DNA of 64,000 nt, taken from Magallana gigas. Its lineage: Eukaryota. The stretch spans positions 20,336,001 to 20,400,000 of the forward strand of contig NC_088857.1 in NCBI RefSeq assembly GCF_963853765.1, read 5' to 3'. The notes below the pieces were generated by a model. It saw nothing but the letters and a program-made list of their open reading frames with translations, was not told the DNA's origin and did no database searches. Shown here piece after piece: positions 17,801 to 20,522 of the stretch (positions are counted from its first letter, which is position 1; each line of letters begins with the position of its first letter). Both the position numbers and the translations under genes were made by a program.

Positions 17801-20522
17801 TTAATTATTTTTATATAATCAATAAAAATTAAGCTTATGGCTTTTCCCTAAATAGAGTGTAAACATACTTTTTGGATAGGAAATGTTAGACCCTCCAATA
17901 GAATCGCTGACATTGTTGTCTGGCACTGTCATTGTTGTTGGCAGTCCAAAGTCTTTGTTGAGGGCCCAATAGGAACCTTTACAACAGATCTGTGGCACCG
18001 TAAACTTGATCTTCTTAAACCACTTCTGGTACAGAGCATGACGAACAGAGGACTAAACAAATAATCACAAAGCAATTCTAAATAAACCTTGTTTACAAAG
18101 CATTTTTATTCCAAAAAAGATATATTTAACTGTTTCTTATCTTTCTTTTATCTAAATTTAGTCAAAATTTGCAACTTAAATTAAATATATTTGAAATTTA
18201 AACCTTAATTTTGTATCTTTGCTATAGTTATTTTAAGTAACTTTATGGAAAATTGAAAAAAAAAATTGCTTTGATTCTTGAAATAAACCCTGCATGAATC
18301 AAATATCATTTATAATCCATACCCTCCAGCTGTTGATGGCAGATGGGTCCATGTATTTGAAGTAGGGATACATGTTCCTGTTTGAAAAGAAAATGAACTG
18401 CATGGTTATAAGAAGAAGTTGCAACACATTGGCTCTATTTAGTCTTATCCAAAAGCATATACCTTAAGCATGAACAAATTTAGAGGGGGAGGGTCAGAAA
18501 GGTCTGCCCTCCCCCCTCCATCTAAAATATTGTGCTGGATTAAGATTTAAAATTTAATTTTCATCAGATCAACTCACTGTAGGGCAGCATATATTTGAGG
18601 CACCTGCAAAAGGCCATCTGGACTCTCTTGCAGTACTTTGGCTACAAGTTGTACTAGCTTTCCTGATGGTCGCAGCAATCTAGTACCTTTATCAAAAGAA
18701 GAAATATATGTAGAATGTCTGTAACATTTCTGATAGGCAAAAGAATTAAAAACCTCATATACGTATCATTTTTTTTGGTTCTGTGTTAACTAAACTTATG
18801 TGTTTGCTCAGGACCACTATAGATTTTTAATACATGCATGCGAAATTTCACTTTCATTCAGTGAAAATACTAACTTATTTTTCTTTGACATTGATTTTGT
18901 AAGAAAGAAAATGCTGACATAGTTTGTGTAATCATTACATAATAAATAGTAATAAGTCACTTGTCCTCAAGGTTTTTAAGGTAAGTATATAGGGAGGGTG
19001 TTAAGGCAAGCAATTTCTCTGGCTATAGGTAAACTTTGATTAATTGCCACCCCACCTCTTAGTAGTGAACTCTTAATGAACTTTGATCCTTCTAAATCAT
19101 TTTTGGCCTCTCTCCCTTGCAGAACTACTTTTATGATTCTGAAATAATTAAGAATTACCAGTGGGTAACATTTTGGTGTTATCATACGGATCGTGAAAAT
19201 CGCAGGCAGTAACGTAACAGCTGTCGGTCAGGTAATTCCGTCTTTTCTTCTTCTTTGGCAGCGGGCAATTCAGATGAAATCCATTCAAATTAGATGATTC
19301 CTGAATATCATAACCAATGTCTCCTGGCTTTACATAATGATATTTGTCTGCAGAAATAGTTCTGCAGTATTCTTCTGCCCTTTCATGAATATCTCTTTCT
19401 TCATACTGCAAAATTGCACAATGCACATCTTTTAATCTCAGATTAACATTTTTTTTATCTTTTTCAAATATTTTAAAAAAAATTTAAATATCAATTATCA
19501 CTTGAATGTGAAAATTCAATACCTACAACATCACTTTATGTAAAGTTTCATTATATGTCTTTAGAAAATTGATACACTAAATATACTCTCATATATAATG
19601 CATAAATTTGTTAATTAATTGACAGTGGTCTGTTGATGCAACAAGTGGGGCAATGCATATCAGAAACCTAACTTGGCTAGAGAAGATGACACCATACCTT
19701 TGTAAATGAGTATATCCCTTTGGAAACCTTTTCTTGAATACTTTTACTTCTTTCTTCAAAATCGGATTCATCTAAAATTAAGTTGTGTTAACATTAAGAG
19801 TAAACTTGGAGGACAAAAAAGACCCCAAAACAGGGAGGAAAGTAGGTAAATATTTTTTTCAACCAAAGTAAATGCAGTACTGACTTTGCGACTATATAGC
19901 GCGACAAACAACTTAAAGACCAATGTATCCATGAATATTTTTGCTTTTAATTTTTTTCTATCCAATACTTACTTTGAACATAATTTGGAATATTCTCTTT
20001 AGAAAAGTGGACAGGCATAGCATGGATGAAGGCTATGCCTGTTCGCTTCTCAAAAGAGAATACCGGTAAATTTAGAATACAAATCCAGCCAAAACATAAA
20101 GGCATTTATCTCAAAACACTGTTTTAATAATATTAAGGTGAGTTTAATAATCTTATGCATATACATTAAGATTTATGTTCAAACATTTTATGTTAAAAAA
20201 AGTTATAAAATCATTTAAACTCACCTTCTTCATCTGAATTGATCATTGATGTTGGAATAGGGTGTTTTAACCTGTTTTTGTCTTTCCTTTTCTTGTGCCT
20301 TTTCTTTGAATTAAGAGGGGGGTACACATGGATTCTCCGCTTATCATTTTTGGTGTGAATTTTCAAAACATGTATTTCATCTTTGTAATCATGGAATGCT
20401 GTGGAATTTTGACAATTTATTTTCTGCTTCAGTTCTTTGAATCCGTGAAAAGTAGTTGAGGTATGAATGTTAATGGATACTGTGGGGACATTTCTAGGGC
20501 TATCATCGTCATTGGAACTCAT
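14860..20522 (-). CDS. Divergent forkhead-box (Fox) transcription factor, orphan subclass, 9 coding exons, 632 aa
   Basis: Exons (minus) 20522-20225, 19771-19698, 19405-19159, 18686-18578, 18377-18323, 18052-17869, 17535-17405, 16143-16020, 15536-14860. All are GT-AG and phase-consistent (1899 nt). Spliced domain: RPSGKLVQLVAKVLQESPDGLLQVPQIYAALQNMYPYFKYMDPSAINSWRSSVRHALYQKWFKKIKFTVPQICCKGSYWALNKD, which matches the forkhead pattern (IY..L...YPYF...W..S.RH.L...F.K...KGSYWAL). Basic NLS-like motifs PKKKKRR and KRRYRKKK; acidic C-terminus. Confidence 0.85.
15767..15984. mobile_element. Tc1/mariner-type MITE, family 1 copy 2
   Basis: TACTGTGGTATGATC...ATGAAACCACAGTA, collinear with 8745-8955. 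Confidence 0.75.
16410..17133 (-). mobile_element. Tandem TRIM (miniature LTR retrotransposon) array whose LTRs contain tRNA-like Pol III promoter sequence
   Basis: On the minus strand, four 132-147-bp LTRs (17133-16995, 16952-16821, 16719-16573, 16548-16410) start TG (the first is mutated to TA) and end TTACA. Each inter-LTR segment starts TT-TGGTGC(C/T)GT.ACC (PBS) and ends in a purine tract (A)GGGAGGAA. A 4-bp TSD ATAA lies at 16406-16409 and 17134-17137. The LTRs hold A-box TAGCTCAGTGG and B-box GGTTCGATTCC-like sequences. Confidence 0.85.

Follow-up and report, generated by a model that had tools for sequence, protein, structure and literature searches.

The forkhead domain encoded between positions 17869 and 18686 of the window (the whole 64,000-nucleotide stretch analyzed here, NC_088857.1 positions 20,336,001 to 20,400,000; all coordinates below are window positions) belongs almost certainly to the Magallana (Crassostrea) gigas FoxZ gene, LOC105339975, alias Fox-OG16/NA. 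The best explanation of the evidence is that FoxZ is a protostome-restricted forkhead class, expressed almost only in testis, whose DNA-recognition helix carries serine in place of a base-contacting asparagine. We consider it probable that FoxZ is a male-germline transcription factor with sequence-specific binding to a motif other than RYAAAYA. The gene and its class were already known: The locus has an annotation and the name FoxZ, it figures in counts of oyster forkhead factors, and its testis specificity is on record. Added here are an exact ten-exon model, the invariance of the helix from oysters to ticks, and a finer reading of the helix itself.

The gene was identified through its protein sequence. 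A full-library phmmer search with exon C, the third exon of the domain (61 aa), returned 26 matches with E up to 0.001. Four of these (P0008, P0017, P0019, and P0023) are repetitive proteins matched in several stretches and were rejected as spurious; the others are full-length proteins of 366 to 671 aa or exon-sized fragments, all with the same helix. A word search with the nearest full-length match, P0002 from Saccostrea, led to P0028, an NCBI "uncharacterized protein [Magallana gigas]" that equals the window gene model apart from a splice difference of six residues where exons 1 and 2 meet. Its domain is the same residue for residue, and P0028 was used in database tools in place of the spliced window protein. 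The 90% cluster of P0028 also contains XP_019927657.2 (P0044), an allelic form with 10 residue differences (one indel) from the window protein.

Nicolini et al. 2025 (PMC12530298) enter XP_019927657.2 in their Table S6 as "Fox-OG16/NA ... Fox-Z (Yang et al., 2014; Wu et al., 2020)," the two older papers being given here as that table cites them, and likewise assign the scallop (P. yessoensis) orthologue XP_021353413.1 (P0055) to Fox-Z. The window gene is thus orthologous to the FoxZ of both C. gigas and P. yessoensis. The same study reports Fox-Z from bivalves, Lingula, Capitella, a scorpion, and Strigamia and leaves open its relation to other Fox classes. An earlier note on this DNA, made from the letters alone, had called the protein an orphan. 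That description does not hold for a catalogued gene with same-helix relatives across Lophotrochozoa, a myriapod, and ticks; the accompanying guess at a lineage-specific Fox class was essentially right. The note had also counted placement in a known subclass already having this helix against its own interpretation, and FoxZ is such a subclass.

The domain is divided among three small minus-strand exons (A, B, and C; 109, 55, and 184 nt), each with an AG acceptor before it and a GT donor after it in the minus-strand sequence. Exon A translates as TRLLRPSGKLVQLVAKVLQESPDGLLQVPQIYAAL, exon B as (Q)NMYPYFKYMDPSAINSWR, and exon C begins SSVRHALYQKWFKKIKFTVPQICCKGSYWALNKDFG...; the spliced domain reads T-R-L-L-R-P-S-G-K-L ... 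Q-I-Y-A-A-L-Q-N-M-Y-P-Y-F-K-Y-M-D-P-S-A-I-N-S-W-R-S-S-V-R-H-A-L-Y-Q-K-W-F-K-K-I ... K-G-S-Y-W-A-L-N. The coordinates and residues first proposed for the three exons proved exact. As was also noticed then, the small exons hide the domain in the mechanical list of open reading frames (ORFs), which shows nothing more of them than entries of 34, 42, and 59 aa. Genomic ORF fragments from other species begin Q then S-S-I-R-H-A-L, or stop at S-S-W-R then V, which places an intron directly before S-S-[IV]-R-H and indicates that its position is conserved.

Transcript evidence supports the gene model throughout. RNA contigs from three runs, each of a separate study (X1, X4, and X6), were mapped to positions 14800 to 20600 together with raw-read run X20. 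Joints 17535>17869, 18052>18323, and 18376/7>18577/8 are present in all three contig runs, and joint 18683/6>19156/9 occurs in X1 and X4, with the same junction shifted 2 bases in X6. Other contig joints are 19405>19698, 19771>20225, 16142/3>17404/5 (two runs), and 15536>16020 (three runs); canonical joints end CT..AC on the plus strand, that is, GT..AG on the minus strand. Spliced contigs from three studies therefore carry all the junctions, as the RNA check proposed earlier had called for, and the gene is real and expressed. Joining the nine coding exons yields a single open frame of 632 codons. A loose contig end at 20535 matches 20978 to 21004, so that a noncoding 5′ exon ends at 20976, followed by GTAAGT; the gene thus has 10 exons, with the forkhead domain on coding exons 4 to 6.

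Variant joints were also seen. The X6 joint 18688>19161 (TT..CA) was considered as a second isoform and rejected, being junction 18686>19159 displaced by sequence variants. In NCBI isoform X2, the six residues EDESDF are missing from the start of exon 2 (19698 to 19771), where it joins exon 1, and one X4 contig joins 15409, rather than 15536, to 16020.

Profile scores and the predicted fold both place the protein in the forkhead superfamily. Pfam Forkhead was the only family matched by exons A and C (13.7 and 14.2 bits, colinear profile positions 2–31 and 49–82). With the identical domain of P0028, the HMMER check against Forkhead PF00250 that had been suggested gave 47.3 bits (E 2.3e-12; cutoff 27) over profile positions 2–82 of 88. 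Relatives score 49–62 bits, and all these values are low for the forkhead family. Against PDB sequences, phmmer with exon C alone gave no match, and the full domain and the family profile retrieved Fox domains only. An ESM Atlas search gave only generic forkhead clusters, with scores <0.9 and no class information.

A folded winged helix, as the earlier note had proposed, is what AlphaFold2 predicts. P0028 residues 192–303 were modeled without DNA from a domain alignment of 23 members from molluscs, Lingula, Capitella, and Strigamia (alignment A2), with a mean predicted local distance difference test score (pLDDT) of 81.8 and a predicted template-modeling (TM) score of 0.75. The model orders its helices (H) and strands (S) as H1 (20–30), S1, H2 (38–48), a short helix, H3 (57–71), S2, the wing loop, and S3, the predicted counterpart of the winged-helix order H1-S1-H2-H3-S2-wing1-S3. 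Foldseek returned forkhead domains only as its top matches: FOXA2 at TM 0.85, FOXA1 at TM 0.88–0.89, and FOXN1 with a root-mean-square deviation of 1.3 Å over 86 columns at 32% identity.

The departure of FoxZ from other Fox proteins is concentrated in and around helix 3. In Fox proteins, helix-3 Asn(i), Arg(i+3), and His(i+4) make base-specific hydrogen bonds, and the Asn is retained in 47 of 49 human FOX proteins (PMC9701222); the N and H of N-(S/A)-I-R-H are direct contacts (PMC8501956). FoxZ has Ser at position i in all 23+ members, keeps Arg(i+3) and His(i+4), and replaces the second Asn (of R-H-N-L) with Ala. The canonical N-(S/A)-I-R-H helix is thus absent from FoxZ; because its Asn is a feature of most Fox classes and not a strict definition, superfamily membership stands.

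The earlier note had correctly seen that helix 3 departs from N-S-I-R-H-N-L-S and that the base-contacting Asn is Ser. Its further claim, that the final Ser had become Tyr, gives way to a different picture: In every HMMER alignment with solved Fox domains, a one-residue gap follows R-H-A-L, with Y-Q-K-W-F pairing L-N-K-C-F or F-N-D-C-F, so the canonical Ser is better taken as deleted than as substituted. The loop between H2 and H3 gains four residues in the alignments, which in the predicted model lengthen helix 3 at its N terminus. Ahead of helix 1, the reported change of KPPYSY to RPSGKL stands insofar as RPSGKL is present, and is refined to the oyster version of a class consensus K-P-P-x-K-L. 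A precedent for changed specificity is FoxH1, in which Asp in place of the Asn turns binding toward GG/GT sites (PMC9701222), and in FoxN proteins the H2-H3 loop has been linked to whether FKH or FHL motifs are chosen (PMC12143875). The FoxZ literature that we read does not discuss this combination of Ser for Asn, one residue fewer, and a longer loop.

The altered helix is a fixed property of the class. Relatives were collected by word-index and profile searches, which are limited by shared words and in which absences are not proof. They include bivalves (oysters, scallops, venerid, mactrid, and myid clams, Dreissena, a unionid, and Mytilus) as well as Haliotis, Gigantopelta, Octopus, a chiton, Lingula, Capitella, Strigamia, and two Dermacentor ticks; within the reach of these searches, no deuterostome, cnidarian, or insect protein was among the matches. 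All relatives share the helix S-W-[RK]-S-S-[IV]-R-H-A-L-[YF]-Q-K-W-F. Alignment A2 is invariant at S-W-x-S-S-x-R-H-A-L-x-Q-K-W-F-x-K, a string that the ticks and Mytilus also carry. Together with the family alignment A1, it yields the class signature L-P-x-G-[TS]-x-L-x-[KR]-P-x-x-K-L-V ... S-W-[RK]-S-S-[IV]-R-H-A-L-[YF]-Q-K-W-F, which is complete in the window sequence. Outside the domain, F-T-K-x-E-E-x-D-I-H-x-R-A-E-x-Y and a K-R-R-x-Y ... C-x-V-T lead-in are shared, and most non-oyster members have P-S-P-V-x-D-P-D-P-I-L.

Conservation is concentrated in the domain. Identity to other phyla is 51–62% in the domain, 13–31% in the N terminus, and 3–17% in the last exon (the tail). Between the window protein and three allelic oyster proteins there are 10–11 residue differences, none of them in the domain, and the 21 coding differences between RNA contigs and window include three synonymous and no nonsynonymous changes in the domain against three and six in the last exon. 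These polymorphism counts are small, but they point the same way as the cross-phylum conservation, and constraint is judged here from the two together. Since all members have the same helix, what had looked like a rewritten helix is a strongly constrained signature of an old class. An orphan Fox copy, in decay or confined to this species, would account for the low Pfam score (47 bits) and the fast-evolving tail; it is contradicted by the intact 632-aa frame across nine coding exons, the spliced transcripts, the strong testis expression described below, and orthologues with an invariant helix in four phyla. We rule it out and give it practically no credence.

Published expression data tie the locus to the male gonad. 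The gene "Forkhead LOC105339975" shows a male/female log2 fold change of 7.79 in C. gigas gonads and of 7.77 for the C. sikamea orthologue, with 0.11–0.72 fragments per kilobase per million mapped reads in four females vs. 46–66 in four males; it is scored "Up," in the direction of Dmrt1, SoxH, and Prdm9 (PMC12111275 supplement). This testis bias of ~200-fold thus holds in two Crassostrea species, and the gene was among the sex-biased factors picked for reverse-transcription PCR. A study of the clam Mulinia lateralis has FOXZ as a hub of the testis module, rising at molecular sex differentiation, and calls it protostome-specific (PMC9716669).

Older names probably conceal further family members. 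CgFoxN5, described in 2014 as a testis-specific oyster Fox gene with a weak database match (PMC4232546), and the male-biased octopus FoxN5 (PMC11202624) both probably belong to the FoxZ family. CgFoxN5 (Cg23645) is likely to be LOC105339975 itself, because each data set contains a sole divergent testis-specific Fox gene.

From these properties we propose a mechanism. Basic runs resembling nuclear localization signals lie at residues 73–80, 175–180, and 322–331, on both sides of the domain. Net charge is −42 over the C-terminal 225 residues, compared with +8 for the domain; the earlier note's description of flanking motifs and an acidic C terminus was accurate. The basic runs would import FoxZ into the nucleus, and helix 3 would dock in the major groove of DNA, the mode seen for other Fox proteins. 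There, the Arg and His contacts would be retained, and what is read would be altered by Ser(i) together with the shorter helix end and the extended loop. The acidic tail may serve as an activation region acting on spermatogenesis genes, so that FoxZ would drive a male-germline (spermatogenesis) program through a motif differing from RYAAAYA. We lean, by a little, toward the altered-specificity step of this scheme. A more far-reaching version, on which we are doubtful though not dismissive, would have FoxZ embody a distinct ancient mode of DNA recognition, with its Ser for Asn, its helix 3 shorter by one residue, and its longer H2-H3 loop all frozen since the protostome ancestor. It would use a motif unlike both RYAAAYA and GACGC to control a set of male-germline genes among molluscs, annelids, brachiopods, and part of the arthropods.

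Several points weigh against a male-germline factor with altered specificity. We found no DNA-binding data for any FoxZ protein in the searchable literature, and Ser can still form hydrogen bonds, which with Arg and His kept could let FoxZ bind a forkhead-like motif. The model was predicted without DNA, and its wing 1 is of moderate confidence (pLDDT about 65). Raw-read run X20, sampled at ~1%, placed zero reads on the gene and so gave no strand, level, or transcript-end information of its own. RELAX returned K<1 (relaxed selection) for Fox-OG16/NA as a whole gene (PMC12530298), a result for the whole orthogroup that fits its fast-evolving flanks.

Two other accounts of DNA binding were weighed. 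FoxZ might bind ordinary RYAAAYA or a close variant, with the helix changes tolerated or compensated, and differ from other classes mainly in its expression site and partners. FoxZ retains Arg(i+3) and His(i+4) along with W, the Tyr of helix 2 (QIY), and the wing residues KG-x-x-W, the predicted fold superposes closely on DNA-bound FOXA and FOXN1, and FoxH1, with its own Asn replaced, also binds TT forkhead sites (PMC9701222). Yet the Asn that FoxZ lacks makes direct base hydrogen bonds and is kept in almost all human FOX proteins. FoxZ also alters the second Asn, the helix-3 end, and the H2-H3 loop, which is tied to FKH/FHL choice (PMC12143875), and the invariance of these altered residues over protostome history suggests functional contacts, not tolerated drift. 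We regard ordinary binding as unlikely, while taking it seriously.

The second account dispenses with base-specific reading: The domain would be a nonspecific, linker-histone-like chromatin binder or a protein-interaction module in spermatogenic cells. The key Asn, the canonical Ser, and the Y-S-Y before helix 1 are all gone, testis-specific expression falls at chromatin-remodeling stages, and PDB entry 1vtn notes in its title a resemblance to histone H5. Against this, helix 3 is invariant across phyla on its solvent-exposed face (S-S-x-R-H), a pattern expected of a specific ligand surface, and the protein combines a basic domain, basic runs on its flanks, and an acidic, activation-like tail. 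A loss of specificity therefore seems decidedly improbable to us, and specific binding to an altered motif remains our preferred interpretation.

The features of the gene are collected in the following table.

Features of the M. gigas FoxZ gene in the window
Feature	Position	Strand	Content	Basis
Noncoding 5′ exon, 3′ end	20976..21004	-	donor GT 20975-20974	contig loose end and sequence
Coding exon 1	20225..20533	-	ATG 20522-20520; N-terminal region, basic run KKRHKKRK (aa 73-80)	joint 19771>20225, open frame
Coding exon 2	19698..19771	-		joints 19405>19698, 19771>20225
Coding exon 3	19159..19405	-	FTKxEExDIHxRAExY, basic run KKKKRR, lead-in Y..D.C.VT...DN...LP.GT	joints and family alignment A1
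Coding exon 4 (exon A)	18578..18686	-	forkhead helix 1, strand 1, helix 2	Pfam profile 2-31, joints, predicted model
Coding exon 5 (exon B)	18323..18377	-	YPYF, H2-H3 loop with 4 extra residues, helix 3 start to W-R	joints, alignments
Coding exon 6 (exon C)	17869..18052	-	S-S-V-R-H-A-L-Y-Q-K-W-F (rest of helix 3), strands 2-3, wing 1 (KGSYWAL)	Pfam profile 49-82, joints, predicted model
Coding exon 7	17405..17535	-	start of post-domain basic run KKKRRYRKKK	joints 17535>17869, 16142/3>17404/5; frame
Coding exon 8	16020..16143	-		joints 15536>16020, 16142/3>17404/5
Coding exon 9	14860..15536	-	stop 14862-14860; acidic C-terminal region; 3′ untranslated region runs below 14860	ORF, contigs over 14800-15536

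Repeats occupy parts of the gene. The intron at 16144–17404 contains two tRNA-like sequences found by ARAGORN (16442–16513 and 17027–17099, minus strand), whose anticodon loops are odd. Both lie within repeat copies with alike ORF translations (…SSVVELLTRVAGVPG.IP.PAICF…), which therefore look like elements of the SINE (short interspersed nuclear element) or TRIM (terminal-repeat retrotransposon in miniature) type. RNA contigs and reads pile up at these repeats, with joints 16965>16821 and 17014>16430. Another repeat, at 15770–16157, abuts exon 8 (16020–16143) and reaches an RNA word depth of 5000–6000 vs. 100–200 for FoxZ exons; many reads break at 15946–15986, and one strand-switching joint was seen (15846/15964).

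Outside the gene, the minus-strand segment 21080–21200, upstream of the 5′ exon, contains two CCAAT motifs and a TATATATA stretch (read by eye) and is a possible candidate for the FoxZ promoter region. On the plus strand, a 200-aa ORF at 9896–10498 has a weak match to Sulfatase_C, the aryl-sulfatase C-terminal region (20.9 bits, below the cutoff of 30.9), and is probably the last exon of a sulfatase-like neighbor gene. A 236-aa Lys/Glu-rich ORF at 23759–24469, upstream of FoxZ on the same strand and with no Pfam match, may be an exon of the next gene.

The Asn-Arg-His triad is the means by which nearly all Fox proteins read DNA; in FoxH1, the one well-studied exception, an Asn change re-aims the domain. 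FoxZ would be a second natural exception, one that several protostome phyla conserve and that has ties to testis development in commercial bivalves, whose sex determination is poorly understood. Its motif would inform both the rules of forkhead specificity and the search for target genes in mollusc spermatogenesis.

Compared with FoxZ of bivalves and other protostomes, the window gene is the same gene: Nothing differs in identity, the taxon range found here (bivalves, Lingula, Capitella, Strigamia, and chelicerates) agrees with that reported, and expression is testis-specific as for Mulinia FOXZ. FoxR1/FoxN5 of vertebrates and FoxT of panarthropods (fd3F, Crg-1) are likewise gonad- or male-biased divergent classes (PMC11202624, PMC8918179); FoxR and FoxT are set beside FoxZ here by literature description, and FoxR, unlike FoxZ, is reported absent from molluscs (PMC12530298). 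Whether FoxZ might be panarthropod FoxT was considered through a word-index search with Strigamia FoxZ, which found mollusc, brachiopod, and tick relatives and no insect, a kind of search that could miss a distant link.

FoxN1/4, FoxN2/3, and FoxK share with FoxZ the P-Y-F motif, K-x-F-x-K-[VI] after helix 3, a C/S-x-W-A-[LI]-N wing, and an intron-split domain, and FOXN1 gives the closest superposition on the predicted model. They differ in keeping N-S-[VI]-R-H-N-L-S and in having neither the four-residue loop insertion nor the FoxZ flanking motifs. A rival classification would deny FoxZ a class of its own and make it either what vertebrate FoxR (FoxN5/6) is in protostomes or a strongly derived gene of the FoxN/FoxK type. 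The name CgFoxN5 for the testis-specific oyster gene, the male-biased octopus FoxN5, and scallop and octopus proteins automatically named "Forkhead box N2" all point that way, and FoxR1 has S-P-x-G-L-x-V-Q-Q-I-Y in common with FoxZ. The A2 profile also scores FOXK2, FOXN1, and FOXN3 best among solved domains, but the ranking is flat (FOXK2 53, FOXN1 51, FOXN3 51, FOXK1 48, FOXA 48, FOXH1 38–44, and FOXO 41 bits), so that similarity to FoxN and FoxK is no stronger than to FOXA. Moreover, no Fox-R was found in molluscs and Fox-OG16/NA was not placed with any reference class (PMC12530298), and the name CgFoxN5 reaches this locus only through the likely identity of Cg23645 with LOC105339975. We consider a merger with FoxR, FoxN, or FoxK improbable and treat FoxZ as a class of its own, a separateness taken from PMC12530298.

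FoxH1 offers the one well-studied parallel for the helix. As in FoxZ, its base-reading Asn is replaced with Arg and His kept, and its DNA preference is shifted (PMC9701222). The replacement is Asp rather than Ser, and FoxH1 has Leu/Ile at the helix-2 Tyr that FoxZ keeps. Its biology differs as well: FoxH1 is a maternal factor of the Nodal pathway, whereas FoxZ is a gene of the testis.

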